Shown: positions 13,695-51,140, numbered from the stretch's first letter. The stretch: DNA of 64,000 nt from Macrostomum lignano (GCA_002269645.1 NIVC01004000.1:1789-65788), one strand, 5' to 3'. The notes: generated by a model from the sequence alone, not told the origin. Numbers and translations are program-made.

Positions 13695-16600
13695 TTATTG
13701 CCTTCCACCGCCCGTGCGAATGTAGGAGATCGTCGTTGGAACGTGGACCTCCTCGAATGTGCACAAGAATGCGTCTGCGCTCTGCAATGCAGTACATGTA
13801 GGTTCGAGCGTGTAACAATGGGCATAATGCTTTAACAGTCTAGACTACTGGAGTTCGCCCAGTCAAGTAGTCATGCTGGAGTATATTAAGCCTTTCAAAC
13901 CTTTTCGTCCGGCAGGCAGGCACCGAGAGCCTGCAACAGGAGTGGCTCATCAACAACGCTGCTCTTGAACTGGGCATAGTCAATGGTACCCTTCTTCTGC
14001 GTGTCCTGCGGGTTGAATGCATGAATTGTGTTTGAAGCTGATGTTGGAACACGTCTATGGCCAAAATACCAGCTATTGAATATAGACCGACACTGTGGAA
14101 AGCTTCTTTATATATTTAAGAATTTGAGCATTCATTTAAGGCATTTAAGGCCACTACCAATCATATTACTTTCATCTACCTACATGCACCGTCTATGGTC
14201 AAAACACCGCGTCTATGGTCAAAACACCGTCTATGGTCAAAACACCGTCTATGGTCAAAACACCGTCTATGGTCAAAACACCGTCTATGGTCAAAACACC
14301 GTCTATGGTCAAAACACCATCTATGGCCAACTTAAAACTTGTCTATGGTCAAAACACTGTCTATGGTCAAAACACTGTCTATGATCAAAACACCGTCTAT
14401 GGTCAAAACACCATCTATGGCCAACTTAAAATCTTGTCTATGGTCAAAACACCGTCTATGGTCAAAACACCGTCTATGGTCAATGGGACAGGCAAAGGCA
14501 GAGCATTAAATTCAATGCTCTCCCCATACGCGGCTTAGACCATAGACAATTCCAAGTTTAAGATAAGCAATCCATGTTATTCCAGGTTCATCCATGGTTG
14601 GCAGGGTCTTGAATTAAATGCAAAATTTCCTAAATAATTTTTTTTAAATCTTGCAATTAGGGGGCGCAATGGGCGGTTTCATGACCCACTGAGAATGTCT
14701 ATGGTAAAAAGACCGCGCAATTCAATGACGTCACAAAATTCAAAGACAGGTCTTCTCTAAAGAAAGGAGTGCTTGTATGGACTTACATAATTTTGATTAG
14801 TCAAATTTCCTTTGAATTATTTACTATATCATTAAAGTTTACTAAACAGATAAAGGATATATCTGTTTAATAAATACGTAGATTCCGCCCATCTACGAAG
14901 TCGCAATTAATTACGCTAACGTCAAATGAAAATTGTCGCTTTAGAATGCGACTTCTGACTTAAGTTTTAATAAAAATTATTGTTATTATTTGTTTGCTCC
15001 GTTACTAAAATTACTCACAAACTTTTTGAAGACAATCTCCACCAGGTCCCTGACACCCTCGTCGGGATCCTCTTCCACGGGTTGCTGAAATTTAAAGTTT
15101 GTTACTGTTTTAATACACTGTTTAAACAGGTATTTCTGCTTTAAGTTTCCAGTCTAAAACCATACATGGAATTCTGAATCTGCTTCAAATTTATTCGAAA
15201 CATTAGCAACAATTTGAAAAGATGTTCTTAAATTTTTTTTGTGACAGGCAGTGAATTTTTGCTATTTTTGTGCAAGTTCAATGAATTTAACTTTGCAGTT
15301 TAAACAGCCGATGTTCAGGTCCATAACGCGTTCATATTAGGAGCATATTGCGCAAGGAAAGTACTTTATCAAGCAAACATGCCGATTAAAATGGCTAATA
15401 TAGCCGATGATAATTAGCATTTTTCACGAGTCTAGGAATTGAATGCCAAAAAGTAACCCATAGCAAATACAATAAATCATTAGTAGGCCATAGGCGCAGT
15501 ACAACTGGATTGAATTGAATGAAACTTCTAAGAAAACGAGATTCCAAGTGCAAGTTTAATTTATTATCAAAATTGTGCAAATTGTTCACATCTTGCAATT
15601 GCTGCATTCAGACATGCGTATGACGTGTGTGTTGAACCATAAAAAATTACAGCAAGTTTGGAACTTTATCTAGCAAATACGAGACAGCACTTACGTAGTC
15701 CAGGCTTCCCTAAGGTGGGTTTGGTAGGATTTGTTAATATAATTGTATAAATTTATAAATTGCAAATCGTAATTTAGGCTTTCGACAGGAATAGATTTGG
15801 TAATAACACAGGGTGAAAAAATCAGAGCCAATTTTATAAATAGCTATATCTGATCGTCTTCTTGCTGAAGTTGATTATTGCGCTAAGTTTAAAGATGTTA
15901 TCTCGGGTATAGATAGAAGCATTTAAATATGTTCAACATAACAGTTCGTAGAAACATTATTTACCATTCAGACGACAATTGAAACCCAAAATCGTTTAAA
16001 TATAGCTACTCACCCTAATCAGAGTTGACTTCAGCAGCTGAAACATCTCGTCCCTGCTGATGACTCCATCCGAGTTGAGATCGTACGCTCGGAATGCAAC
16101 TGAAACCGCGAGAAATTGTCAATTTGTTATGATTGGGGGGCAAAATAGGTGCAAATCCTGGGAACTTGTAATCATAACCTCATACTGCATGGCTAAAAGC
16201 GGAATTCTTACAACTGGTTTTCTCTTCCAATGTGCCTCTGAGAAACGTTGAAATGCCTTTGAGCCACTCTTCCTGACTGATGTTGGAGTCGGAGTCTGTG
16301 TCGAAGGCTCGAAATACTGAAGCGTCATTTTCGCGTGTAAATGTCTGATATATTATGATTTTTGAAAAAATATATCAATTCTAAAAAAAGTTTATTACCT
16401 TGGTCCATCATCAAATCGTCTGTCATGCCGAACGAATTGTGCAAGATGTCCTTGAACTTATTTCTGTCTAGTTTAGCATCATCTGCACCGCCAGTAATGT
16501 CTTTGTACATGTTCAAGAGATGCTCGCATTCCTTTTTTGTAACTGAAATTGTAGGAACTTAATTTTTTTACAAAACTGAATCGTCAGATGGTATCATGAT

Positions 16601-34795: not shown

Positions 34796-35243
34796 TCGAG
34801 CGCTTGTTAGCCTGGCCTGTTCGCAAGTTCCAAATAATTTTTCATTGCTCGCATCCGGCAAGACTTTGCGAGTCCAGTTTGTGCTTAAAAATGAAACCGA
34901 CCTCCAAGTGGTCCTGCTATCCTGACTAGTTCGTGTACAGCTTTATTTTTAGCGGTTTGTATTGGTTTATTTGTTTAAAGAGTTACAGTACGAATTTCTC
35001 GGAAACTTTGGGAAGATTCAAAATAATTGCCTGCTAACTATAGTGTGTTTGAATAAAAATGTTACAGTGTTAAAGGGTTCAAGCTTTGGTAAGATGCTCT
35101 AACAGGCTTTGTTAAACTAAAAAAACTCTTCCATCTCTTATTCTGTCAGAGGAAATGAGCTGCATTTACAAATGGAAATTACATTTGCCCGTCGCGGGTG
35201 CTCTGTCGGTTTGTCACTAAGCGGACGCCGCCAATCAAAGGTC

Positions 35244-35752
35244 TCATATGACAAGCTGGGTGCCTGTTACCTCCGCGTCGACACCGTATATTTTCTGAGC
35301 CCCGCTCTTTTTGCGCTTCTTCATCAGAGCAATCTGGTATGATCGCTGGGCCGCGACCAAGTTTAGAATCTTCTCTTTGCGCTCCTTCATTTTCGCTTTT
35401 GCCTCCTTCAATTCCTTCTTGTATTGCTCTTCTTTCTTCTTTTGTTCGGCTCTTCGCCGCAACCTCTCGGCGTTGTCACGCTCGCGCTGTTCTTGCGCCA
35501 GCCGCTGTTCTAGCTCATAGTTTGCTTCAACATTCTGCTGAACTGTGGGGCGGGTTCAATGACTGCATCGAATCAGGTCCTACAGATCGCTACTTTTAAT
35601 ATGCTGGTCCAATAATAACATAATAGTAACGGCGGCACAACTTTGACTCACTCACCCTGCTGCACAGGAGCCGGTTTTTTGCATCCTTCGCTGTATTGTA
35701 CAAAAACCGCGAACAAGATTGCAGGCAATGCTAGGTATCTGAAAAATGCCAT
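35244..35752 (-). CDS. P1: secreted charged-helix protein, 131 aa, uncharacterised
   Basis: Exon 1 35752-35656 MAFFRYLALPAILFAVFVQYSEG|CKKPAPVQQ, donor gtgagt (phase 1); exon 2 35542-35244 (V)QQNVEANYELEQRL..EEQYKKELKEAKAKMKERKEKIL..KKRKKSGAQKIYGVDAEVTGTQLVI; paralog of P2. Exact acceptor is less certain. Confidence 0.8.
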
Positions 35753-36499
35753 TACTTGTTGGCATCCGAAAGGAGCGTTGCCGATAAGATAGATGGGCTT
35801 AGCCTCGCAGCTTTACTTTCCTAGTAAACTACACTTTGACAGCTCGCCCTAGAGTATAGTCTATGGCCTTCTCACTCAGGCTTCAGTGCGCGCGTAAAAT
35901 TCCACTTATTTACTTTTTGTTTCTGGGTAAAAAGATGCAGGGAACCGCGCGGGTGAAGAGTGATTGGAATTCGTCATTCACTCAGCTACATGTTAAAGCC
36001 AACAAATGGCAGCTTGAATCCAACTCGATCTAGCAGCCAAAACACTTTCTCACTCTCAACCACTCGATTGCAAACTAATTGTGACCTATTTAAGCGTGTC
36101 TAAAATAACTACAAAATGAAACTAAGGGAAGAATTTATAGTCTAGATTAATAAGCTGAGAACTCACAACTCGTCAGGTACCAACATCAGGGTTGACATGA
36201 CTACGACGTATCTTCTCCGACCCATCCCATTGGTTCTTCCTCTTCAACCATCATCGGTCTGGCCATCTTCGGTCAACGAGGTAGTTAAAAACTTTGAAAA
36301 ACTGCAACAGAAACCAAGATACCGCACACTGCCCGCATTCACACAGTGCACTGAAATTTACAGTCTCCTGCAGTGGCTCCAAATAAGTTTAAATCTCTAA
36401 ATCTATAACGCTGGCACAGGGGGTCAGTGACGCTGGCACAGGGGGGTCAGTGAAGCACCTGCTGGTGGAAAACAGCTGAGTCCATCCTAGCTGCAGACA

Positions 36500-37670
36500 G
36501 TGGGGGGGGGGTAAGACTGCAAGTTAGAGAGTACAGTGTCCGTCAGAGTGGTGGCTGAGCAGCAGGTCGGTGAGCTGGGGCCCGGTGCCCCGTGTGTGGG
36601 CACGCAGGCAGAGGCCGATCAACATCTGGCGTCGTCTCTGCGACCACGCGGGTCCGGGCCGCCAGCTCGGCGTTGCTCACGCGCTCGGGGAACCGGATGC
36701 CCAGGGCATTGTGCATGAGGTGGCGATGGCAGCCCTCCAAGCTCGCCTGACGAGTGGCAGTCATGGGAACAGCTACCAGCAGCCCGTAGGTCAGCACCGT
36801 CTCAACTGCCGAGCGGAATAGGGCGACGTTCAGGCTGTCGGTGGCGAGCCAGTAGTTGAAGATGGAGCGGAGAAGGTGGGAGGCCCACCAGGCTGTGCTT
36901 GCGGTTGTTGACAATGACATCCGGGTCAGAGACCAGGACACCCCAGATACTTGAACTGGTTGCACAGGGCGATGGTGTTGCTGTCCGGCAGAAGCAGCAG
37001 TGGAGAGTTGGCAATGCCAACATGCAGCACCTCTGCCTTGCCGTAGTTGATGTGGAGCCCCACGCGCTTCCCCTCGTTGGTCCGCCGACTCACCGCCGTC
37101 TGCGCAGCTTTGAGACTGCAGCAGGTCAGCGCCAGGTCGTCGGCGCAGGCGAGGCAGGTCGGCTTGACGCAGGCAAAGCGGGAGCTACGGCGAAGCACCA
37201 CTTCATAGCCGTCTTCATCGCGCAGAGCCAACCGCATGACGAAGTCGATCAGGATGACGAATACAAACAGGTGTCGCTTTGCGGAAGTGGTTGTCAATTC
37301 AGCTTTAGGGCCGTGGTCAGTCTAGACGAAAGCGCCTTGGATGAGCTGTAGAGGTCCATGATCGCCTGGACCAGCATCTGAGAAACTCCATGCTGCTGGA
37401 GGAGCTACGCAATGGCCTGGCCGCCCGGCTGACTGAGTCAAAAGCTTTGCACAAATCTGCAAAAACAATTGACACCGCCTTTTGGCGAGTCTTGCAGGTG
37501 TCTATGATGCACCGGACCGCAGCGACTTGTTTTTGCTGTTGACCGTCCAGGTTGGAAGCCGTTCTGGATATTGAGAAGCCTCTGGTTGATGATGGGTTGA
37601 ATGCGGTTTCGAAGGATGGTGTTAGGACTTTGGCCAGGGTGCACTCCAGGGCGAAGTGACTGATATTGAC
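36500..37670 (-). pseudogene. Degenerate non-LTR (LINE) reverse transcriptase, RTE/RTEX-like
   Basis: Frameshifted pieces IQNGFQPGRST, SIVFADLCKAFDSVSR, FVILIDFVMR, CLACADDLAL, VGLHINYGKAEVL, QFKYLG. Confidence 0.85.
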
Positions 37671-37789
37671 GTACGATATTGACCCACAATATTGACGTAC
37701 ACTGTCGTTTCCTTTACTCACATTTCGAGTTCATACTAGCAAATATTGACTTAATGTTCCCACTTTTATACCTTCATTTTATTTATTCT

Positions 37790-38362
37790 AATTGTGTTGT
37801 ACTTCCGGATGTGCTTCGCGGATTGCTAGCTGGATTACGCTGGGGTGATTGGCCAGGTGCACGCTGTAGCCGCCTTCAGAGAGCCAGCGCTGAGAAGACT
37901 GATCCGACACCAACCTTTGTGAACTGTAGTCTGTTCCCCGGCGGTGTGCGTTGTTGTTTTTTTAGAAGCTCATACGACTTGCCTCCCACGCTGGGATTAG
38001 CTGCATCGATTGGGAAAATACCAGCCCACCTGCTACGTGTATCACATTCCTGGGAGTGCAAATCGACAGCACATCCGGTCTAGCTGCTATCCCTGCCGCA
38101 GAGCAAGACAGATGAGCTGCGGATGTTGCTGCGTGGAGGTTTGAGCGCTAAGAGTCTGTCAAAGCTTCAACTTCAAAAGCTGGTGGGCAAAATCGGCTGG
38201 TTTTTGCAAGGTGGCTCGCCCCGCTCGAGTCTTTCTGCGAGCTCGAATTGACGTCACCAACACCATCAATGGGTGTCATCGCCGGATTCCCGTGGCGGGC
38301 GAGCTCCGCGTTCAACTGGACTGGTGGCAGCATGGCCTTCCGCCTTTCCATGCAATCGTCTC
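37790..38362 (+). pseudogene. DIRS/Ngaro-type (tyrosine recombinase retrotransposon) pol remnant
   Basis: TSPPATCITFLGVQIDS, LPQSKTDELR, LSKLQLQKLVGKIGWF, ARVFLRARID..RRIPVAGELRVQLDWW resemble the DIRS RT C-terminal/connection region; frameshifted. Confidence 0.7.
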
Positions 38363-39118
38363 TGGTGCTAAAGCCCCTGGTGCTAAAGCCCCTGGTGCTA
38401 AAGCCCCTGGTGCTAAAGCCCCTGGTGCTAAAGCCCCTGGTGCTAAAGCCCCTGGTGCTAAAGCCCCTGGTGCTAAAGCCCCTGGTGCTAAAGCCCCTGG
38501 TGCTAAAGCCCCTGGTGCTAAAGCCCCTGGTGCTAAAGCCCCTGGTGCTGAAGCATTTGGTGCTAAAACCACTGGTGCTAAAGCACTTGGTGCTAAAGCC
38601 ACTGGTGCTAAAACCACTGGTGCTAAAACCACTGGTGCTAAAGCCACTGGTGCTAAAACCACTGGTGCTAAAACCACTGGTGCTAAAGCCACTGGTGCTA
38701 AAGCCACTGGTGCTAAAACCATTGGTGCTAAAGCCACTGGAGCTAAAGCCACTGGTGCTAAAGCCACTGGTGCTAAAGCCACTGGTGCTAAAGCCACTGG
38801 TGCTAAAGTCCCTGGTGCTAAAGCCACTGGTGCTAAAACCATTGGTGCTAAAGCCCCTGGTGCTAAAGCCCCTGGTGCTAAAGCCCCTGGTGCTAAAGCC
38901 CCTGGTGCTAAAGCCCCTGGTGCTAAAGCCCCTGGTGCTAAAGCCCTTGGTGCTAAAGCCCCTGGTGCTAAAGCCCCTGGTGCTAAAGCCCCTGGTGCTA
39001 AAGCCCCTGGTGCTAAAACCACTGGTGCTAAAACCACTGGTGCTAAAGCCACTGGTGCTAAAGCCCCTGGTGCTAAAGCCACTGGTGCTAAAACCACTGG
39101 TGCTAAATATCCTGGTGC
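38363..39118. repeat. 15-bp minisatellite CTGGTGCTAAAGCCC
   Basis: About 50 copies, reading GAKAP/GAKTT in the DIRS frame. Confidence 0.97.
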
Positions 39119-39547
39119 TGACGCTTCAGCGCCCTCCATAATTAATCCTACCCGGCAGCTTACACTCCTGCAAGCTGAAACCGAGCAGTCCGTGCCAGCG
39201 GTAATTGCCATAGCAGTTTTTTTCTCTCTAATACCACAATAGACAATACAGTGCTGCACAAATAGCTCGTACTTCTCTATCCTCTTGAAAATCGCAATAC
39301 ATCTAATTGAATGAGAAATTGCAATAAAACAGGCAATTAAAAATGAGTTAAAACACTGTCCTGTGTATTATTTATAAACCGATCCAGTAAAGTAAACGAA
39401 ATTAAATTTCCTGACCAGTAGAACTCTAGAATATTAACAAAACTTCTCAGGCTTTTGTCTTGAGCTGCGCCTTAAACTGTCAATTATCTCGGTTTCGTCC
39501 TTAATAAATAAAACTGCAGCTGATGGTTGCGGAGCGGTCTCCGCAAT

Positions 39548-40096
39548 CTAGAGGATTATTTGCGTACCAGTGGTGGTGGCCACAATGCCTGCGATCTTCT
39601 TCTCGCCTTTCTTCTTCCGCTGCTCCAGCAGAGACTCCTGCTTGGTGCGCTCGGTTGCTATGGTTTCAAGGAGCTGTTTGTTTCGCTGTCGCATTTTCGC
39701 TTTGGCCTCGTCCAATTTCTTCTTGTATTCTTTTTCTTCTGCCTCCTGCTTTTTCTTCTTTTCGGCTTCGTCAGTTTCCTCTTTCGGCTTTTTCTTTAGC
39801 GTGTAAGACTTGTAGAACTCTTTCACTGTTAATATAGCATGGGGAAAAGTGTGTTTTGTCAGAGTCTGTTCATAAACTGACTGACTTTTTAAGGCTTTGT
39901 CATCACGGCTGTTAATGGCATGAAATTCCCCTCTTATAGTCCTTTTTACTGTTTTTACTGAATGAAAACATGCGGTTGGAATTGCCAACTCACCCTTATT
40001 GACCGCCGCTTTGCATCCGCTGCTATAGTCCGGCAGCACAGCTAGCAGAATGACTGCCAGCAACAGGCATTTCATCGACCATTTCAATAGCACCAT
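39548..40096 (-). CDS. P2: secreted charged-helix protein, 126 aa spliced (182 aa if the intron is retained)
   Basis: Exon 1 40096-39994 MVLLKWSMKCLLLAVILLAVLPDYSSG|CKAAVNK, donor gtgagt (phase 1); acceptor ttaacag at 39826; exon 2 39825-39548 ..EEKEYKKKLDEAKAKMRQRNKQLL..RKKKGEKKIAGIVATTTGTQIIL. Confidence 0.85.
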   Translation of the reverse strand: MVLLKWSMKCLLLAVILLAVLPDYSSGCKAAVNKGELAIPTACFHSVKTVKRTIRGEFHAINSRDDKALKSQSVYEQTLTKHTFPHAILTVKEFYKSYTLKKKPKEETDEAEKKKKQEAEEKEYKKKLDEAKAKMRQRNKQLLETIATERTKQESLLEQRKKKGEKKIAGIVATTTGTQIIL

Positions 40097-40542
40097 TTCA
40101 AGCTAATCTGATTTGCAGTCCGAGCTTCTTCTTCTAGCCCGCGTCTCGCAAAGTGCACTTTTGTCTACCTAACTATGATTTTCTCAGCCGCTTCTTTACC
40201 TGTGAGTGAGCCCATAGATAGGGTGGCTGCTGTAGACTGTGGGCAATCTTTTAACTATTAACTGTGCATGTTTTATGGCTAGCAAACTCTGCGAGTTCGC
40301 AATCGATCAAAACGTAAATTTTAACAAAAAAAACTTTGCGAACTTTAGTCCCAGAGATGCCAACCGGAAAAAAACACATGCTAAACTTTCAAAGTCAACC
40401 ATGCACTTGGATGACATTGTTGACTTATCAAGTTTGCAAAGTATCATTGTCATGAACTTAAACAGTATATGCAATGCTTTTGTCAAAGTTCAATCGACTT
40501 GAAAAGTTTACAAAGTACACGCCTGTCTCTACATCCAAGTAC

Positions 40543-41240
40543 CAAGGACGACTTAAGTAGAAGGACGGGAAACCTCGTTTCTTAGAAAATTTTTGAAGGC
40601 ACTTTTTCCCGAAAAAATACACTACGGAGATAGGAAATTTTCATTTTTTCAGCACAAAAATTGCTATTACTTTTGATAGGAGGCAGATCCAGTGCTCATC
40701 TTTTGATATGTTGTGCCTTTTTTATTGCTCTATCGATATTTATAAAGCTTTTAGTTCAGAAAATTAGGATTATATGTCAATTTTTTATTCTACGTACATT
40801 TCCTGTATCTGAAAATCACAAAAATGCATGACACAGCTCCAATATTTGCTTTTATGAACCTGTTTTATCATCTCTGTTACGAATATTTGCTAAACAGTCA
40901 GTTAAGAATGATAAAATAGACTTCTAAAACCAAAGAGCCGAGCCGTGGCATTCTAATGTATTTCAATCACAAGACACGTGGAAATATACGGAGAATAAAA
41001 AATTTACATAGAATCCTAATTTTCTGAACTAAAAGCTTTGTAAATATCGATAGAGCAATAAAAAAGGCACAACATATCAAAAGATGAGCACTGGATCTGC
41101 CTCCTATCAAAAGTAATAGCAATTTTTGTGCTGAAAAAATGAAAATTTCCTATCTCCGTAGTGTATTTTTTCGGGAAAAAGTGCCTTCAAAAATTTTCTA
41201 AGAAACAAGGTTTCCCGTCCTTCTACTTAAGTCGTCCTTG
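40543..41240. mobile_element. Foldback MITE with CAAGG termini, P-superfamily-like, 698 bp
   Basis: About 255-bp near-perfect TIRs; 8-bp TSD CCAAGTAC at 40535-40542 and 41241-41248. Confidence 0.92.
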
Positions 41241-41774
41241 CCAAGTACTTGGAAAGTACTTATCGAATGTACTTTACTTAGGCTGTCCTCGCCACGAGGT
41301 TCCATTGTTGACTTATCAAGTAATTAGCAAGTTTGGTTTGTTTTTTCCTCGGGCAGGCACAACCCCCCTTGGAAGCAGTGTTGCTTTCGCTTTTCTGTGA
41401 TCTTCCTCTCCATGCAGCCACGGTGTGCACATGTACTTTTAACCTGATAAGCAATTAATAGGAAAGTCAAGTAAAGTTTTTCGAAATTCACTGCCGCCAC
41501 ACTTAGTGGAACATGAGTCTGTATTCTGTCTAACTGTAATTGTTGAAAGTGTTTAAGCATTTTTCCAGCATCAGATAAACTAAATACAAAAGTTGCCAAT
41601 GCTAATGAAACAACTACGAGTATAAATGCATTACAGAGGCCTTAAAATGTAGAGGAAATCAAATTGCACTCAATTAACAAATGAAAGCTGGAAAGAAATA
41701 GTAAATGTCTGTCATGGTGTACTAAGCGTAGAGATTGTAAGGTCGTAGCCAACATTTTTGTCCGTGGCCGGCTT

Positions 41775-43521
41775 CTATTTGTATGTGACAGGAGGCGGAG
41801 CGCTCTCGCTTTGCATCCGATTCTTCTTGTTATTTGTGTAGCCCAAACTGACACCACCAATGGTACCGGCGGCAAGCATTCCAGTGCCAACACTGATTCC
41901 GGCTGTTTTTGTCGCACTGGGGCTTTTTTTAGCTGTTTTGCCCACCTTCTCGGCGCTTTGGGCAATATCGGCGGCCGCTTTCGGCGCCTTCTTTCCGCGT
42001 CCGAATACTCGACCGACGCGCCTGCCAACCGCCTTGACCGCTGCGTGCGAATTAGAAGCGGGTTGGGGTTGCGGCTCTCAGTTTCGGATCAGTGCCTGCC
42101 TATACTATAGTTGTAACAATATTCACAGGGGACTGTAGCCTAGTGGTTCAAGGTCGGGGGTTCGATTCCTGATCCTACTGGAACAATTTGTGTCCTTGAG
42201 AAAGACACTTAACCTCTGCATAGCTTCAGTTCACCCAGCTGTAAAATGGGTGCCAGCATTAGCTGGGGTAATTGAGGCTGTGTGTGGCGACCCCCCAGTC
42301 CTTGGACTGAACAGCCGCTGAGATAACTGCGGCTGAGCTGTCGGTTGCACATATTTCCATTACGGCAGCACAAAGTCCCGAGCACATTTAAGTGCGCCAA
42401 TATCAAAACTTTTCGGCCTATGATATAAGCATTCTTTCTTTCAGAATTAAATCTTAGCAGCGCATTCGAGGCCACTCGGCAACTCCCCCATACGCCCCCG
42501 AACCAAATGGGTGATTCCCTATGAGCCCTGAATCAATTAACAGGGTGATTCCTCTAGAGGCCTGAACCTACTAGGTGATTCCCTATGAGCCCTGAACCAA
42601 CTGGGTGATTCCCTATGAGCCCTGAACCAACTGGGTGATTCCCTATGAGCCCTGAATCAATTAACAGGGTGATTCCTCTAGAGGCCTGAACTTACTAGGT
42701 GATTCCCTATGAGCCCTGAACCAACTGGGTGATTCCCTATGAGCCCTAAATCAATTAACAGGGTGATTCCTCTAGAGGCCTGAACCTACTAGGTGATTCC
42801 CTATGAGCCCTGAACCAACTGGGTGATTCCCTATGAGCCCTAAACCAACTGGGTGATTCCTCATGAGCCCTGAACCAACTGGATGATTCCCCTCATGAGC
42901 TCTGAACCAACTGGGTGATTCCTCATGAGCCCTGAACCAACTGGGTGACTCCTCATGAGCCCTGAACCAACTGGGTGATTCCTCATGAGCTCTGAACCAA
43001 CTGGGTGATTCCTCATGAGCTCTGAACCAACTGGGTGATTCCTCATGAGCCCTGAACCAACTGGGTGATTCCTCATGAGCCCTGAACCAACTGGGTGACT
43101 CCTCATGAGCCCTGAACCAACTGGGTGATTCCTCATGAGCCCTGAACCAACCGGGTGATTCCCCCCATGAGCCCTGAACCAACTGGGTGATTCCTCATGA
43201 GCCCTGAACCAACCGGGTGATTCCCCCCATGAGCCCTGAACCAACTGGGTGATTCCTCATGAGCCCTGAACCAACCGGGTGATTCCCCCCATGAGCCCTG
43301 AACCAACCGGGTGATTCCGCAAGAGCACTACTGTAAACCAATTTTGATACTAATGCCAATTGGGTAATTCTCTTATGCATTATAGTATAATTTCTAATTT
43401 TAAGGCACATAAGCAAGGCTGACTACTTACCACCTTTCAATTTCCTAAAGCAGCCATCGCCAGGTTCGATGAGGATCACCAGCACAATGGTAAATAACAA
43501 TGCTAATCTTATGTAACCCAT
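41775..43521 (-). CDS. P3: secreted cationic amphipathic peptide precursor, 118 aa
   Basis: Exon 1 43521-43431 MGYIRLALLFTIVLVILIEPGDG|CFRKLKG, donor gtaagt; exon 2 42040-41775 (A)VKAVGRRVGRVFGRGKKAPKAAADIAQSAEKVGKTAKKSPSATKTAGISVGTGMLAAGTIGGVSLGYTNNKKNRMQSESAPPPVTYK. The ORF track gives the wrong frame here. Confidence 0.88.
42128..42352 (+). mobile_element. CORE-type SINE, family B copy with internal head deletion, inside the P3 intron
   Basis: TAGCCTAGTGGTT..GGTTCGATTCC..GTGTCCTTGAG..CAGTTCACCCAGCTGTAAAATGGGTGCCAG. Confidence 0.85.
42500..43316. repeat. 29-32-bp minisatellite TCATGAGCCCTGAACCAACTGGGTGATTCC (P3 intron)
   Basis: About 27 copies. Confidence 0.95.
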
Positions 43522-43954
43522 TATAGGTCCCAGTTATTCTCTACTCTCTTGTATGACTGCTCTATTGAAGTGATATTTCTACCAAGATGACAACTACAAC
43601 CGGCAAGTGATGCATCGAGGCTCAAGTTGCTTTTTTCGGCAATCAAATTTTTAGCGATTTCAAGCATTTAGGTTGATAGTAGATTACCATAGACATGATC
43701 TGACTGCCGTATAATAATAAAAAAGTCCCTTTATTAAAAAAGTAACAAATTACTGCAGCAAACAACAAGCTCTTATTCACTGCACCAGTATAATTATAAT
43801 TAGTCGTCTTGCAGTTTTGTTCGAGATAGAATTAAGTAAAACTTAAGCAAAGACCACCTTTGCAATGCATTTAAATGTTTATATTCGAATAAATGACATT
43901 ATTACGCTGTGGTTTATTTTATTCTGATCACCAAGGCGGATGGTGATGGGTGGG

Positions 43955-44216
43955 TGGTTACCAAGGTGGATGATTACCAAGGTGGGTGATTACCAAGGTG
44001 GGTGATTACCAAGGTGGATGATTACCAAGGTGGACGATTACCAAGGTGGGTGATTACCAAGGTGGGTGATTACCAAGGTGGGTGATTACCAAGGTGGGTG
44101 ATTACCAAGGTGGGTGATTACCAAGGTGGGTGATTACCAAGGTGGATGATTACCAAGGTGGGTGATTACCAAGGTGGGTGATTACCAAGGTGGGTGATTA
44201 CCAAGGTGGGTGATTA
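43955..44216. repeat. 16-bp tandem repeat CCAAGGTGGGTGATTA
   Basis: About 16 copies between P4 and P3. Confidence 0.95.
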
Positions 44217-44725
44217 CGCGACCCGCCAATTAAAGTCGCAGGATGGTAGACAGGCGTGGCAGCGAGGTCCTCGAGTGCAGAGCCATAAGTGGAGAACCAA
44301 ATAAAAACGAAACTTAAGTTAGAAGACTACTGTGCAAGCTTAAAAGAATTGAGTACATAGTCACTATAAGAATATATGAGATATAATCTGTGAAGCACAA
44401 CTGAAACTGTCTAAGAAGCTTTATTTATATTATATGTTAAAACTAAAGTCACGAGTCCTCTGCCGATGACATACCGGTAAAAATAACATCCAGTAAAACA
44501 AAATTTACAAAAACACATTTCAACTGCTCAAAGTGCAATTTTGGCAAACTACGTAGATCTGGATCTAATTTAAAAGAAACTGTGCTGATTTAAAAATAAA
44601 TTTTAAAAGAAAAATTTTTGGTAAATTGGCTATATACTTAACAATTGAATACGCAACGAGTATTTCGAGTATAAGAATACCGCAAAGTACACATTATTTC
44701 CTTATGCATGTCTGTGCAGGGTCTC

Positions 44726-46114
44726 TTAGTGGGTGACGTACGAACCGCTGCTCATGCCTTTTTTCTTCTCTTTTTCCCCCACGTACACGGCGCCCCCCAG
44801 TGCCGCACCTCCAACCGTGCCACCAATGAGGAGCGAGCGCGCCGTGCTGAAGCTCTTGGACTTCTTGGCCACCTTGCCAACGTCGTCCGCAGAATTCGCA
44901 ATGACTTTGGCGGCTTTTGGGCGTCTGGCTATTTTGAACACCTTGCCGACTCTCTTGAAAGCTGGGGGCGCGAGAAGTTTTGTTAGAATGAAATGAATGA
45001 ATGCCCAGTGGCATTTAGAAAATAATAGCAATAAAAATTGGGATACGCTTCGGCGACATCTTCCCGCAGCCGCAGCCCTGAGGCAATTCTGCATGCAAGC
45101 GCGCCTCACACAGGGTGTACACAAGCGCGCCTCACACAGGGTGTACACAAGCGCGCCTCACACAGGGTGTACACAAGCGCGCCTCACACAGGGTGTACAC
45201 AAGCGCGCCTCACACAGGGTGTACACAAGCGCGCCTCACACAGGGTGTACACAAGCGCGCCTCACACAGGGTGTACACAAGCGCGCCTCACACAGGGTGT
45301 ACACAAGCGCGCCTCACACAGGGTGTACACAAGCGCGCCTTACTCGAAATCTAATGGTAAATGTTTTGAAGGCAACTTTTCGCCTTTATATTGGTCTTGT
45401 AATTATTTTAAACTTTTTTTTAAGTGACAGACCAATTTAACATAAAAAATCGATTAATGCGTCGTTAGAGCAGCATGTGAGGCACAAAATAGTGTGATTA
45501 GAACTTTCTCTGACACTATTAAGAGACCCAATCACTGTTTTAGTGTTGAAAATCGGGAAATTTCCTATCTCCTTTGTGTATTTTTCCGGTGAAACCGCTG
45601 CCTTTAAAACCATTTCTGGACGAAAAGCTTTATGAATATCGATAGAGCAATAAAAAAAGGCACAACATATCAAAATATGAACACTGGATCTGCCTCCTAT
45701 CAAAAGCAATAACAATTTTTGTGCTACAAAGATTAAATCCTCTTATCTCTCTAGTGTATTTTTCGGCGAAAAGTTGCCGTCAAAATATTTACCATTAGAT
45801 TTCGAGTGTTGCGTTCTTCTACTTAAGTTGTCCTTGGGTGTACAGCGGCCCTTTGACTGTCTAATCATCAGGCATGTACACTTTCTGTGCCCGAATCGCA
45901 CGACAGCTCCCTCCCGCGTTGATCTCAGTACGAGCGTGTTAAAAAAGGCCGTATGAATTCGAACAGTCTCAAGTTTTACCAATTTCATTGCCAACTGCAA
46001 GACTGACTACTTACCACCTTTCAAAGCCTTCAATTTCTTGACACAGCCTTCACCAGGTTCGATGAGGATCACCAGCACAATGCTAAATAGCAATGCTAAT
46101 CTTATGCATCCCAT
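44726..46114 (-). CDS. P4: secreted cationic amphipathic peptide precursor, 111 aa
   Basis: Exon 1 46114-46015 MGCIRLALLFSIVLVILIEPGEG|CVKKLKALKG, donor gtaagt; exon 2 44961-44726 (A)FKRVGKVFKIARRPKAAKVIANSADDVGKVAKKSKSFSTARSLLIGGTVGGAALGGAVYVGEKEKKKGMSSGSYVTH. Confidence 0.9.
45096..45339. repeat. 26-bp tandem repeat CAAGCGCGCCTCACACAGGGTGTACA
   Basis: Nine perfect copies plus a 10-nt partial copy. Confidence 0.97.
45122..45836. mobile_element. Second, diverged copy of the CAAGG foldback MITE family (P4 intron)
   Basis: Right end CTACTTAAGTTGTCCTTG and sub-terminal block match 40543-41240; 8-bp TSD GGTGTACA at 45114-45121 and 45837-45844; left end replaced by the 26-bp array. Confidence 0.8.
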
Positions 46115-46439
46115 TTAGGTTGCAGTTAAGTTATTTTTTAAACAGACACTCCTGTAGGGCTGTTGAAGAACAGATTAAACCGATATTTCTACGAAGATTA
46201 CGAAAAAGTTTTGTTGGCAATAAATAAATTTCGTTGGTTTGACAATAAATTGCCATAGACAATTTTAAATTGGCATCTTAAGAAAGACGCCGCTCATCTA
46301 AAATGCGATCAGAAGCAAACAGGAGAAACTGAGAGTAGGTGGGCTTGTTAAAATTGTGTTTTGACACAGCCTATGTCAAATTATTTATTGTAAAAAGCCT
46401 ACAGCGTCATCAAAACAGCATGACGTTAGAATCTAAGAC

Positions 46440-47505
46440 TTAGAAGAGGAAGGAGAAGATAAGAGGATAGATGAGATGAGAGATTAAAGGAAAGAGGAGA
46501 TAAGAGTATAGATGAGATCAAATATGAAAGGAAAGCGGAGATAAGAGGATAGATAATTTGAGAGATGAAAGGAAAGAGGGGATGAGAGGATAAATGAGAT
46601 GAGAGATGGAGAGATGAAAGAAGAAATGAGATGAAAGAAGAGATAAGAGGAAAGAAGAGATGAGAGATGAAAGAAGAGTTGAGGGATGAAAGAAGAGATG
46701 AGAGGAAAGAAGAGATGAGAGGAAAGATAAGATAAGAGGATAGATGAGATGAAGGATGAGAGATGAGAGGAAGAAGAGATAAGAGGATAGATGAGATGAG
46801 AGATGAGAGATGAAAGGAAAGAAGAGATGAGAGGATAAATGAGAGGAGAGATGAAAGAAGAGATGAGATGAAAGAAGAGATAAGAGGAAAGAAGAGATGA
46901 GATGAAAAAAGAGATGAGAGATGAAAGAAGAGTTGAGAGATGAAAGAAGAGATGAGAGTAAAGAAGAGATAAGAGGATAGATGGGATGAGTGATGAGAGA
47001 TGAGAGGAAGAAGAGATAAGAGGATAGATGAGATGAGAGATGAGAGATGAAAGGAAAGAAGAGATAAGAGGATAAATGAGAGGAGAGATGAAAGAAGAGA
47101 TGAGATGAAAGAAGAGATGAGATGATAGATGAGAGGAGAGATGAAAGAAGGGATGAGATGAAAGAAGAGATGAGATGATAGATGAGAGGAGAGATGAAAG
47201 AAGGGATGAGATGAAAGAAGAGATGAGAGATGAAAGAAGAGATGAGAGGATAGATGAGATGAGGGATGAGAGATGAGAGGAAAGAAGAGATAAGAGGATA
47301 AATGAGATGAGAGATGAGAGGAAAGAAGAGATAAGAGGATAGATAAGATGAGAAATGAGAGATGAAAGAAAAGAAGAGATGAGATGATAGATGAGAGGAG
47401 AGATGAAGAAAGAAATGAGATGAAAGAAGAGATGAGAGGAAAGAAGAGATGAGAGATGAAAGGAAAGAAAAGAGAGGAGAGAGAGGAGATGAGAGGGGAG
47501 ATTAG
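46440..47505. repeat. Purine-rich low-complexity satellite (GAAAGAAGAGATGAGA-like)
   Basis: Almost no C on the plus strand for 1 kb; lies between divergent genes P4 and P5. Confidence 0.95.
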
Positions 47506-47925
47506 AGAGCGGAGGTAGGCCAGATGATTGCTATTGTGAAGTTTCAAAGGACTCGAGGGCCAGATAGAAAGGCAATTCGCAGGTCGCGTGTGGAATCTAT
47601 CACTTCTTTCGTCTTCACCTTGAATTAAACCCATGGGATTCTTCCGTCATAGCCGAGCAGTAAACTATTTATGTATTTATTTGTTTAAATAATCTTCAAG
47701 TTACAAAAATAGTATCTACATCAATCGATAGAGAGTAGTTGTATCTATGGTCTGAATTAATTATATGTAGTAATTCTGGATATAGAAAAAAATCTGATTG
47801 CCCCAAATAACCAAGCAAGCTAGCGAAGGCCAATATTGAAATAATATTGATTTTCCAACTAAAACAACAGACCCACACAAATTTCTTCATGTACAAGCTC
47901 CAGTAAATGCTCAGGCAGACTTCTC

Positions 47926-49463
47926 ATGCGAACTCAAAGCTTTATAGCAATTTACTTTATTCTGCTCACGATTGTCAGCCAGTTTCCAAGCGGCGGCCAA
48001 TGCTGCCCGAAAGCAGTAAAATCATGTGAGTTTATCGAGTTTATGGAAATAATGCTTTATTATTAATTTGCACATTGAATGTCTGAGAAATTCAATAATT
48101 TTATTAGTAGGAAGTGAAGTCGAGGGAAGCTGTGATTGGTGAGAGCAGGCTGTGATTGGTGAGAGAAGCTGTGATTGGTGAGAGCAGGCTGTGATTGGTG
48201 AGAGCAGGCTGTGATTGGTGAGAGAAGCTGTGATTGGTGAGAGAAGCTGTGATTGGTGAGAGCAGCTGTGATTGGTGAGAGAAGCTGTGATTGGTGAGAG
48301 CAGCTGTGATTGGTGAGAGAAGCTGTGATTGGTGAGAGCAGCTGTGATTGGTGAGAGAAGCTGTGATTGGTGAGAGCAGCTGTGATTGGTGAGAGCAGCT
48401 GTGATTGGTGAGAGAAGCTGTGATTGGTGAGAGCAGCTGTGATTGGTGAGAGCAGGCTGTGATTGGTGAGAGCAGCTGTGATTGGTGAGAGAAGCTGTGA
48501 TTGGTGAGAGCAGCTGTGATTGGTGAGAGCAGGCTGTGATTGGTGAGAGCAGCTGTGATTGGTGAGAGCAGGCTGTGATTGGTGAGAGAAGCTGTGATTG
48601 GTGAGAGCAGTTGTGATTGGTGAGAGCAGCTGTGATTGGTGAGAGCAGCTGTGATTGGTGAGAGCAGGCTGTGATTGGTGAGAGCAGCTGTGATTGGTGA
48701 GAGAAGCTGTGATTGGTGAGAGCAGCTGTGATTGGTGAGAGCAGGCTGTGATTGGTGAGAGCAGGCTGTGATTGGTGAGAGCAGCTGTGATTGGTGAGAG
48801 CAGCTGTGATTGGTGAGAGCAGCTGTGATTGGTGAGAGAAGCTGTGATTGGTGAGAGCAGCTGTGATTGGTGAGAGCAGGCTGTGATTGGTGAGAGCAGG
48901 CTGTGATTGGTGAGAGCAGCTGTGGTTGGTGAGAGTAGCTGTGATTGCTACAATTTATTCAATCCTTGTTTGCAGTGAAATCGCGAGCGAAATCGTTTTT
49001 TAAGCTGAAATCTGCTAAGAAAGCCGGCGACGCGCCGGGCAACGCAAACAGGAAGTCCAGCGTTACCGACATGGATAATCCCGGGTGTAAAAATCCCTTT
49101 TTTCCCTGCAACGAGGGCGGCCTGGTGAAATCCGTGGGTAAAAAGGCCGGTGCGGCTCAAAAGGGGAAATCAAAAAAGTCCGCCGACTTGGATAATCCCG
49201 GCTGCCAGAATCCGTTTCTGCCCTGCAAAAAGAGCGGAGGCTTCTTTAAAAGAGCGGGCGGGGCTATCGGTCCACACAAAAAGAAAATCGGCTTCATAGG
49301 TGCTGGCGCTGCCACAACCGGCTTGGCCGCTACTGGAGCTGCTGGCATTGCTCTATCCAAATCCGGAAAAAGTGATCCGACAGCTCAAACAATTGATCCC
49401 GACAGAACGGGTCTCGCTGGTGGAGCGAAAGCTTATCTTGGTATTGACAAACAAACCGCGTGA
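47926..49463 (+). CDS. P5: secreted Lys/Gly-rich precursor with two Cys-loop modules, 195 aa
   Basis: Exon 1 47926-48025 MRTQSFIAIYFILLTIVSQFPSGGQCCPKAVKS, donor gtgagt (phase 1); acceptor tttgcag at 48975; exon 2 48976-49463 with DMDNPGCKNPFFPC, DLDNPGCQNPFLPC and IGFIGAGAATTGLAATGAAGIAL. Confidence 0.88.
48128..48946. repeat. 19/20-bp minisatellite GCTGTGATTGGTGAGAGCA(G) (reverse CCAATCAC) filling the P5 intron
   Basis: About 42 copies. Confidence 0.97.
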
Positions 49464-50199
49464 ACATTCTAATAAGTTACTGTCAGGATCCGGACTAAGT
49501 ATGGTCAAGAATGAATTTAGCAAAAAAACTGCTGTTGAAGTTTGTTAGCCATTAAGTTAAAGGAAATTATTACAATATGGTTGGCTGACGGCTATTTAAT
49601 CGGGCCTTTTGGACCAGCCTCATTACTAGCAAACAGTAAATACCATTAGCTAATCGAAGACTTTAAATAACCCGTTCACTTCTCAGTCAGCATGTCGTCA
49701 AAAGACTCTTTCTTCTCTGTGTAAAATTAAGCTAAACTATTTTTAAGTGTATGTTAATTATTTGTGCTATTTTTGTTGCTAGTTTTTGTTAGCAAACGAG
49801 TATATTGAAAGTTTTTCTTTTATAAATACATAAATGTATTATTCTGCCTAAACAATCTTTAACTCAGCGTCCAAGCCAAGGAGATGGATGTTACTACAAT
49901 TTATTTTTACTTTAACAGTGTACGTGTAACAAGCTAAAATACACGCGAGTATAATGTATTTCATTTCTTACGGGAACCTAATTATAATGCCTTAGCTATT
50001 TTGAAGCCCTTTAAAATTAAAGATCTACAGTTTCCGTTTGTAAAATCTATTTGTACTTTATAATTACATGTACACATATGTACATGTATATGTACTGCAT
50101 GCACGTGTTCTGCATGGGTATGATCCAATCATATTCTGTTGGGGCAGCTGAGACTTGCATGGCGCCAAGAAAAAAGTTATGCATTTTCATTGCGTTTCA

Positions 50200-51140
50200 T
50201 CAAACAGTTTCATCAATCTTTGTCGACTTCCTCAAGGCTTTCGACTCGGTGGCCCGCGGTGCGCTCCCTCACGTGCTCCGTACCGCAGTAGCTGATCTTC
50301 GCAAACATGGCGCTGTACCAGGACACGACCGCTGCGGTAGCGACGCCGACGGACCGTCGGACCTGTTCAGCACGACCTCCGGAGTGCTGCAGGCCGTGAC
50401 ACTCTGGCGCCCTTCTCCTCTTTGTTTTGCTGATGGACTGTGTGCTCAGGAGGCGGCGGCCTGCCGACAGCAGAGAACGGCCTTCTACTGCAAAGGCGAC
50501 ACCAGTCGGCGACACCCGGAGAAGAGGCTGTTCCTCCTCGGCTACTAGCTCGGACGACCTCGCCCTGCATGCTGTCTACGACGGCCGAAGGCGCCCCAAC
50601 GGCTGCTGGATGGCCTGATTGTGGCGGCTGCAAGGGTCGGCCTCGTCATCAACGCCAAAAATACCGAGGTGCTGACAGTTCCCCACGATCTACCCGCCAA
50701 GATAAGACTCAGAGACGGCACGATGGCCCTGGGACGGTGCACCAAGTGCCGTCAGCCCCTCTACTTTAGCGGGCTGGTGACGGATGTGAGCGACGACCTG
50801 GGAGACGGCGCGGCCGGCAAGGCCTGGGCCGCCTTTCGATCTGTGGGCGGAGCTGCTTTCAGAGGCTCTATTGGACAGCTTTAGGTTCCAATGGCAGCTG
50901 TTCCAGGCTGTTGTCGAGACCGCCCTCGACCCTGTACTGGGCGCTCGAGAGGCAGCTCGATGTGGCGCATACGGCTCTGATTCGTGCCGCGTTCGGCGCC
51001 CGCCGCGGCCCTGGCAGCAAGATGACCGACTCCCCGTACCAGCGAGAGCGCACCTGACGCGGCCTTCTGTCCTGCTGAGCAAGCGACGTCTGCAGCTTGC
51101 CGGGCATGTCATCCGGGCCGAAGTCTATCTTGACAGCTGA
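50200..51140 (+). pseudogene. Degenerate LINE reverse transcriptase, same family as 36500-37670
   Basis: IFVDFLKAFDSVARGAL, TTSGVLQ, SDDLAL, AARVGLVINAKNTEVL, FQAVVETAL, RRLQLAGHVIR in shifting frames. Confidence 0.85.

Follow-up and report, generated by a model that had tools for sequence, protein, structure and literature searches.

A cluster of five genes for predicted secreted, cationic orphan proteins in the flatworm Macrostomum lignano

Results

Positions 35,244 to 49,463 of a stretch of Macrostomum lignano DNA hold a cluster of five genes, P1 to P5, whose short products are rich in lysine and arginine and begin with signal-peptide-like leaders. The stretch (the window, throughout this text) comprises 64 kb at the end of contig NIVC01004000.1 (assembly GCA_002269645.1, contig positions 1789-65788). 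P1 to P5 are real transcribed genes, previously listed as hypothetical proteins, and, as judged from every test run, they are orphans restricted to M. lignano. An extracellular role in defence or in mucus appears to be the most likely single reading of their function. An earlier note, made from the sequence alone, had described the locus as a lineage-specific secretory one, which proves a fair description of genes with leaders of this kind, polycationic products, and no relatives outside M. lignano.

Five two-exon genes agree with transcript-derived annotation

The gene models were rebuilt from the sequence, for which both strands of positions 35,000-50,500 were read. Each gene consists of a first exon of 91-103 nt, a single GT..AG intron in phase 1, and a second exon that ends with the stop codon, and the spliced products are 111-195 amino acids (aa) long. 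Five two-exon, phase-1 genes with these same limits had been claimed in the earlier note and were reproduced here. The genes and their exons are listed below, with leaders divided at the predicted cleavage site and the mature start that exon 1 encodes given after it.

P1: product of 131 aa, intron of 113 nt; exact match to PAA48995.1 / Mlig007023
35656..35752, minus strand: P1 exon 1 (97 nt), leader MAFFRYLALPAILFAVFVQYSEG, then CKKPAPVQQ and a phase-1 GT donor
35244..35542, minus strand: P1 exon 2 including the stop codon; helical-looking, Lys/Arg/Glu-rich, C terminus ..TGTQLVI; paralogous to P2
P2: product of 126 aa, intron of 168 nt; exact match to PAA48996.1 / Mlig025199
39994..40096, minus strand: P2 exon 1 (103 nt), leader MVLLKWSMKCLLLAVILLAVLPDYSSG, then CKAAVNK
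39548..39825, minus strand: P2 exon 2 including the stop codon
P3: product of 118 aa, intron of 1390 nt; exact match to PAA48997.1 / Mlig014360
43431..43521, minus strand: P3 exon 1 (91 nt), leader MGYIRLALLFTIVLVILIEPGDG, then CFRKLKG
41775..42040, minus strand: P3 exon 2 including the stop codon; predicted cationic amphipathic helix at aa 24-44, Gly-zipper-like segment at aa 79-97, short basic tail
P4: product of 111 aa, intron of 1053 nt; exact match to PAA48998.1 / Mlig005534
46015..46114, minus strand: P4 exon 1 (100 nt), leader MGCIRLALLFSIVLVILIEPGEG, then CVKKLKALKG
44726..44961, minus strand: P4 exon 2 including the stop codon; cationic amphipathic segment, Gly-zipper-like segment at aa 77-95, basic tail
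P5: product of 195 aa, intron of 950 nt; exact match to PAA48999.1 / Mlig010768
47926..48025, plus strand: P5 exon 1 (100 nt), leader MRTQSFIAIYFILLTIVSQFPSGG, then QCCPKAVKS
48976..49463, plus strand: P5 exon 2 including the stop codon; two repeats of about 40 aa that both contain D[ML]DNPGCxNPF[FL]PC, followed by a hydrophobic, Gly/Ala-rich segment at aa 140-158

An exact-sequence look-up returned all five spliced products as M. lignano hypothetical proteins in GenBank/UniRef (PAA48995.1-PAA48999.1). For this assembly, the annotation in GenBank was built from transcript evidence only, namely, StringTie/TACO on RNA sequencing (RNA-seq) data, a de novo transcriptome, and TransDecoder open reading frames (ORFs) (PMC5730564). 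The junctions of P1-P5 are therefore supported by RNA, given the exact agreement of our models with an annotation of this type, and the lack of spliced transcripts, by which the earlier note would have counted its reading as refuted, is not observed. In the protein collection the housekeeping neighbour of the cluster is, like P1-P5, present from the NCBI genome only, and the missing RNA-derived contigs for the five genes are thus uninformative. A tblastn search with the five proteins found no sixth member or pseudogene in the whole window, the leftover weak matches being to low-complexity tandem arrays, and the sequence 3' of the five stop codons showed no consistent pattern of poly(A) signals.

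Strongly basic proteins with predicted cleavable leaders

The N termini of all five proteins have a short positively charged start followed by a hydrophobic core of 12-16 residues (Kyte-Doolittle value, KD19, of 1.6-2.4). A polar stretch follows, after which the leaders end YSEG/C, YSSG/C, PGDG/C, PGEG/C, and PSGG/QCC in P1 to P5, respectively, the slash marking the predicted cut. Leader and cleavage site were read by the -3/-1 rule of thumb, which reflects the established preference for small residues at signal peptidase cleavage sites, and mature features were counted from the cut after Gly. Cleavage after Gly (-1 Gly, -3 Ser/Gly) would be the obvious reading of these leader ends. In a five-way alignment G23 and C24 are the sole invariant positions other than Met, besides one Ile. 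On this rule-based reading, the hydrophobic leaders with small residues at -3 and -1 bear out the placing of a signal peptide in exon 1 by the earlier note; the 7-11 mature residues that it added to that exon become 7-10 when the cut is set after the Gly preceding Cys.

The predicted mature chains are 88-171 aa long and carry net charges of +12, +12, +17, +17, and +21 in P1 to P5, respectively, with Lys and Arg together making up 18-29% of the residues, so that the Lys/Arg-rich mature parts noticed before are fully apparent. P1 to P4 have a single Cys each in the predicted mature chain, at the new N terminus. The predicted mature chain of P5 has six, which form an N-terminal CC pair and two C-x6-C loops within the duplicated D[ML]DNPGCxNPF[FL]PC unit.

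The mature parts of P3 and P4 begin with a strongly amphipathic basic segment, with a hydrophobic moment (muH) of 0.73 at residues 25-42 of P3 and 0.66 at residues 30-47 of P4 and a charge of +7 over 18 residues. The moment is lower elsewhere (0.50 in P5 and 0.41-0.44 in P1 and P2). AlphaFold placed helices of low confidence at residues 3-18 and 24-44 of P3 and modelled P5 as disordered outside the leader. Further on, P3 (79-97), P4 (77-95), and P5 (140-158) have a Gly/Ala/Thr-rich stretch with GxxxG spacing and borderline hydrophobicity (KD19 of 1.27-1.53), a feature that the earlier note had overlooked. The glycines are spaced G78xxxG82 and G93xxxG97 in P3, G85xxxG89 in P4, and G139xxG142xG144...G154xxG157 in P5, and Lys-rich residues come after the stretch (NNKKNR, EKEKKK, and SKSGKS, respectively). 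The tails of P3 and P4 keep the short motifs KK..M.S.S...VT. P1 and P2, which have no Gly/Ala stretch, are Lys/Arg/Glu-rich with a heptad-like spacing of hydrophobic residues and share the C terminus ..TGTQ[LI][VI][IL].

Three sequence types without relatives outside M. lignano

BLASTP pairs P1 with P2 (E=3e-15) and P3 with P4 (E=1e-29), while P5 is not significantly similar to either pair (E=0.32 to P3), in keeping with the three sequence types distinguished by the earlier note. Profile-profile comparison of P3/P4 with P1/P2 aligned the leader and the G-C junction only (probability 21%), and that of P3/P4 with P5 was not significant (E=0.38). These comparisons neither show nor exclude a common ancestor of the three types. 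Tordai and Patthy reportedly found in 2004 that secretory genes often have a phase-1 intron immediately behind the signal peptide, and, being typical of such genes, the shared intron blueprint is weak evidence of a common origin. The invariant G-C junction and the adjacency of the genes would be better arguments for common descent than intron phase.

Searches of 5.8 billion proteins with P5 alone and with profiles of P3/P4 and of P1/P2 returned M. lignano copies only, and a full phmmer search of P5 against 1.84 billion representatives returned only its own copy. Nothing meaningful was found for P1-P5 in Pfam (up to E=10), NCBIfam, or the PDB sequences, and the earlier statement that the proteins belong to no named family stands.

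Three candidate memberships were tried and rejected. The UniRef name of P2, 'DUF148 domain-containing', was not reproduced, as the SXP/RAL-2 family (DUF148, PF02520) gave no match to full-length P1 or P2 at E<=1 or to mature P2 at E<=10. The Gly-zipper families (PF13441 YMGG, PF13488, and PF05433) gave no match at E<=10 to P3, P4, P5, or a chimeric UniRef model, P0011, and NCBIfam gave nothing. It is on P0011 (A0A1..., from an older assembly) that the UniRef label 'Gly-zipper_YMGG' sits; this model, in which P4 exon 2 is fused to P3 exon 2 with a frameshifted tail, is mis-predicted and may misdirect users of the database. Finally, the leader ends (YSEGC, YSSGC, PGDGC, PGEGC, and SGGQCC) do not fit the bacterial lipobox [LVI][ASTVI][GAS]C, position -3 not being L, V, or I, and the genes are spliced eukaryotic ones; the Lgt/Lsp pathway is not known from animals.

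Old duplications and one conserved leader exon

In the mature regions of both pairs, the proportion of differing synonymous sites (pS) is about 0.85, i.e., saturated, and that of nonsynonymous sites (pN) is 0.35-0.37, which gives a pN/pS of about 0.4; the pairs retain 41-51% amino-acid identity. Saturated pS together with low pN points to old duplications and to long-term purifying selection on the proteins, and such selection is a strong argument against chance ORFs.

The 23 signal codons of P3 and P4 are 91% identical at the nucleotide level (dS of 0.20), versus 51% for the mature part, where synonymous sites are saturated. Identity over exon 1 is 88-91%, and the tract of about 90% identity takes in about 15 nt before the ATG and the first 18 nt of the intron, where it stops. 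Two explanations fit this tract: an old local gene conversion, or a constraint at the nucleotide level like that described for the signal regions of cone-snail toxins. The leaders of P1 and P2 are 51% identical and the rest of these genes 55%. The conserved leader exon with a fast-diverging mature exon that the earlier note invoked for the cluster is thus present in P3/P4 and fails in P1/P2.

A heptamer shared by the upstream regions

TCTATGG is the sole 7-mer, in either orientation, common to the four independent promoters (P1, P2, P3/P4, and P5) when 300 nt of upstream sequence is taken for each. In P3 and P4 it lies within a conserved 23-nt box, and a second conserved island of 17 nt (ATCTTSGTAGAAATATC) lies nearer the ATG than this box; the remaining neutral sequence of P3 and P4 is unalignable. 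The sites are as follows.

35860..35866, plus strand: TCTATGG of P1, at -114 from the ATG, inverted relative to the gene
40212..40218, minus strand: TCTATGG of P2, at -122 from the ATG
43673..43695, minus strand: 23-nt conserved box of P3, TGTCTATGGTAATCTACTATCAA, holding TCTATGG at -172 and matched by the box of P4
46239..46261, minus strand: 23-nt conserved box of P4, TGTCTATGGCAATTTATTGTCAA, holding TCTATGG at -145
47744..47750, plus strand: TCTATGG of P5, at -182 from the ATG
43572..43588, minus strand: second conserved island (17 nt) in the P3 promoter, ATCTTGGTAGAAATATC
46182..46198, minus strand: P4 counterpart of the second island, ATCTTCGTAGAAATATC

In 22 of 5000 dinucleotide shuffles, some 7-mer was common to the four independent promoters and confined to <=68 nt. 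Five of the 10 occurrences of TCTATGG in the 64-kb window outside one tandem array are the five sites listed. That array (14054-14698), which carries TCTATGG about 17 times, was left out of the background count. The shared heptamer is a putative element that fits co-regulation of the genes and is only suggestive of it.

Homeologous copies and flanking genes

The five genes are also found, in the same order and orientation, on contigs NIVC01001374.1 and NIVC01000464.1. The exons are 95-100% identical across the three contigs, and all of the ORF copies (15/15) are intact. These copies fit the known neopolyploidy of M. lignano (PMC10733133). Summed over the five genes, the homeologues differ by about 21 nonsynonymous and 7 synonymous substitutions. 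P1 is the fastest-changing gene among the homeologous copies: between the copy at L003 14382-14888 and positions 35244-35752 of the window there are 13 nonsynonymous and 3 synonymous differences, and the amino-acid changes all fall in the mature part, while P2 to P5 show 0-4 changes each. Change among the homeologous copies is near-neutral, as read from substitution counts that are small. On NIVC01001374.1, the P2-P1 spacer is also about 3.7 kb longer (L001 13032-16773 versus window positions 36400-36619), through sequence that the window copy lacks.

One flank of the cluster holds a p27 autoantigen-like gene (Auto_anti-p27, E=4.7e-15) and, further out, an ankyrin-repeat gene, and the other holds an E2 ubiquitin-conjugating enzyme gene (UQ_con, E=2e-37) and a Glu/Gln-tRNA synthetase fragment. 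The cluster therefore does sit between housekeeping genes, as had been noticed from the sequence.

Repetitive sequence within the cluster

The earlier note had the cluster packed with insertions of four kinds, i.e., long and short interspersed nuclear elements (LINEs and SINEs), DIRS elements, and miniature inverted-repeat transposable elements (MITEs). A LINE and a MITE were identified along with many tandem arrays; the SINE comes down to tRNA-like boxes, and DIRS could not be verified. The two transposon-derived features are as follows.

36543..37721, minus strand: decayed, frameshifted remnant of a reverse transcriptase of the non-long-terminal-repeat (LINE) type, in the P1-P2 spacer
40543..41240, no strand: 698-bp foldback MITE between P2 and P3, with 261-nt arms that are 98% complementary

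The LINE remnant was recognised by an RVT_1 match (E=2.5e-4, ORF 36926-37297) and by the motifs ..FADLCKAFDSV.. and ..ADDLAL.. in adjacent frames. Just past P5, an ORF at 50051-50548 (plus strand) has the LINE-type motif ..FVDFLKAFDSV.. and no Pfam match at E<=0.01; it is probably another decayed retroelement. The foldback MITE is flanked by an 8-bp target-site duplication, CCAAGTAC, at 40535-40542 and 41241-41248, the length of which is hAT-like. Its site is empty on both other homeologous contigs, and it is thus a recent insertion. A decayed relative in the P4 intron (45331-45818), with 81-93% matches to parts of 40586-40762, adjoins a 26-nt array (45096-45340) of 9.4 copies that are 100% identical.

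The introns of P3, P4, and P5 are mostly tandem arrays, which explains their length of 950-1390 nt versus 113-168 nt in P1 and P2. The P3 intron also has, at 42128-42175, a tRNA-like head with A-box- and B-box-like motifs (TAGCCTAGTGG ... GGTTCGATTCC), present in one copy in the window. ARAGORN and Rfam recognised no tRNA at these positions, which may belong to a SINE.

Two further arrays were observed in the spacers. In the P1-P2 spacer, a 15-nt array (38362-39119; 50 copies, 93% matches) keeps open an unannotated ORF of 343 aa at 38211-39242 (plus strand) that encodes (GAKAP/GAKAT)n. Its sole, weak Rfam match, isrG, is far under the threshold and was taken as chance. Between P4 and P5, a degenerate, purine-rich (GA) array at 46457-47507, strongly strand-asymmetric, makes up most of the 1.8-kb spacer between the divergent start codons (GC skew of +0.52 in a 2-kb bin).

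Discussion

We tentatively favour, at a little under even confidence for the statement as a whole, the view that P1-P5 are co-regulated, released products of one secretory cell type that would bind polyanions or membranes and serve as antimicrobial, host-defence, or mucus components. Exon 1 would supply a cleavable signal peptide, the proteins would enter the endoplasmic reticulum, and signal peptidase would cut after Gly, leaving mature chains that start with Cys (P1-P4) or (G)QCC (P5). The N-terminal Cys would be available for disulfide bonding between molecules or for some other N-terminal modification. The mature chains, polycations that are for the most part disordered or helical, would be kept in store as basic secretory products and then released. 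The amphipathic helix of P3 and P4, which resembles that of antimicrobial peptides (AMPs), may engage membranes or polyanions, the glycine-zipper-like Gly/Ala segment of P3, P4, and P5 could insert into a membrane, and the Lys/Glu-rich P1 and P2 look helical or coiled-coil. The source cells may be epidermal/rhabdite or gland cells; the rhabdite-forming cells of flatworms are acidophilic, i.e., rich in basic protein (PMC3001876), which is a lead and not evidence.

Several observations weigh against this proposal. Secretion and leader cleavage are predicted by a rule of thumb. No record of expression, localisation, proteomic detection, or function turned up under the five Mlig identifiers in the literature on M. 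lignano, searched in main texts and supplements. The mature chains exceed typical helical AMPs in length, an anionic pro-piece is absent, and P1 and P2 are not AMP-like, 15-17% of their residues being acidic. The Gly/Ala segments may hold P3-P5 in a membrane instead of allowing release. AlphaFold confidence was low, the pLDDT values of 52 and 46 being too poor to justify fold searches. As to co-regulation, controls, whether shuffled or taken at random from the genome, share a 7-mer in about 7-8% of cases when its position is left free, and TCTATGG was found post hoc.

If the Gly/Ala segments do cross a membrane, P3, P4, and P5 would be small type I proteins that span the membrane once and, instead of being released, stay at the cell surface or in the membranes of secretory granules. 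After removal of the signal peptide, a polybasic domain would face the lumen or the cell exterior, a glycine-zipper helix would cross the membrane, and a short basic tail would lie in the cytoplasm. The three do each have a single hydrophobic, Gly/Ala-rich stretch, about 19-22 residues long and followed by Lys-rich residues, the tail motifs are kept between P3 and P4, and the older UniRef model was labelled Gly-zipper_YMGG, although the label itself is rejected along with the chimeric model that bears it. However, the hydrophobicity of the stretch stays under the usual Kyte-Doolittle transmembrane threshold (about 1.6), basic residues on both sides deprive the positive-inside rule of discrimination, AlphaFold shows no helix there, the Pfam Gly-zipper families do not match even at E<=10, and P1 and P2 have no such segment; on balance we consider membrane anchoring unlikely. 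Also rather unlikely, in our estimate, is an origin in the reproductive glands, as seminal-fluid (prostate) or cement/shell-gland proteins. Weber et al. (2018) listed 76 prostate-limited transcripts, with signal peptides in 38 of 65 and no BLAST match for 31 (PMC5977470), and such proteins of M. lignano are typically short, equipped with a signal peptide, homologue-less, and fast evolving; the first three of these traits make up the profile of P1-P5 as well. The near-neutral change among the homeologues, with all nonsynonymous differences of P1 in the mature part, points the same way, although the counts behind it are small. Orphan secreted proteins are, however, not specific to reproductive glands, and no gene identifier or peptide string of P1-P5 was matched in the supplementary tables of the seminal-fluid screen.

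We find it very improbable that the proteins are precursors of hormones or neuropeptides, from which cuts at the many dibasic sites would yield short peptides, some of them amidated. Prohormones are usually laid out as a signal peptide on a short precursor, and P3 has G-RR and G-KK sites right after the signal peptide (..KAVGRR/VGRVFGRGKK/..). Yet these Gly-dibasic sites are not kept in P4 (..AFKRVGKVFKIARRP..), which makes the prohormone reading unlikely; dibasic pairs are expected from a Lys plus Arg content of 18-29% alone, and repeated conserved peptide units and acidic spacers are absent. The supposition that P1-P5 are non-functional chance ORFs in transcribed, repeat-rich DNA, caught by a transcript-based annotation, draws on a locus full of repeats and transposon remnants, on the lack of homologues anywhere, and on the low structure confidence. 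It is countered by the amino-acid identity that both pairs retain despite saturated synonymous sites, by the intact state of every copy on the three contigs, and by the invariant G-C after the leader, the common architecture, and the canonical splice sites. The pN/pS of about 0.4 and the 15 intact copies in particular make it hardly credible.

A bolder version of the secretory proposal, which we regard as improbable, would see in P3-P5, possibly joined by P1/P2, the first locus for gene-encoded antimicrobial or pore-forming effectors to be described in a free-living flatworm. As a new class of secreted polycations, it would combine an N-terminal Cys (disulfide-dimerised or lipid-modified) with an amphipathic helix and a glycine-zipper insertion segment, would be expressed in one cell type via TCTATGG, and would have a signal exon near-invariant at synonymous sites, like that of cone-snail toxins. 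If the products are secreted effectors, they would be the first candidate gene-encoded antimicrobial or mucus polycations of M. lignano, a transgenic flatworm model amenable to RNA interference, and their short promoters, with a candidate element in common, would make up a compact set for a secretory cell type. The locus is, in any event, a clean small example of the evolution of orphan secretory genes, with two old tandem duplications of constrained proteins, one pair with a frozen signal exon, and three neopolyploid copies with mostly nonsynonymous change. It is at present one of many clusters of orphan secreted proteins in the M. lignano genome, and nothing in it contradicts what is expected of an orphan-rich flatworm genome. 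Four features commend the cluster for experimental follow-up on a small scale: the predicted N-terminal Cys, the helix resembling those of AMPs, the frozen signal exon, and the motif that the promoters have in common.

Comparison with known systems shows partial likenesses only. P3 and P4 resemble the conotoxin and frog-skin (preprodermaseptin-type) families in their conserved signal codons, divergent mature part, and signal in an exon of its own; the cluster differs in that this holds for one pair only, the basic mature part directly follows the leader without an acidic propeptide, and there is neither a cysteine framework nor homology. With the cationic helical AMPs of the cecropin and magainin type, the cluster has in common the predicted signal peptide, the strong positive charge, and the tandem, lineage-restricted genes, the amphipathic helix being confined to P3 and P4. 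It differs from them in the lack of any sequence relation and of an anionic pro-region, in its longer chains, in the extra Gly/Ala segment and tail, and in the Lys/Glu-rich composition of P1 and P2. The bacterial glycine-zipper outer-membrane lipoproteins (OsmB, SlyB/Pcp, and YMGG) are like the proteins of the cluster in their small size, the ..G-C leader end, and a later hydrophobic stretch rich in Gly-x3-Gly, but the genes here are eukaryotic and contain introns, and the -3/-2 residues found (S-E, S-S, G-D, and G-E) misfit a lipobox, which leaves a resemblance only. The nematode SXP/RAL-2 proteins share with P2 a small, secreted, helical, Lys/Glu-rich character, without a PF02520 match here. 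The seminal-fluid proteins of M. lignano itself (Mlig-pro) are, like P1-P5, short, furnished with a signal peptide, and devoid of BLAST homologues or domains; that set is defined by a prostate-limited in situ signal and has no identifier or sequence link to P1-P5. Set beside these systems, the cluster is an uncharacterised example of a familiar kind, i.e., a taxon-restricted tandem set of small, predicted secreted, basic proteins.

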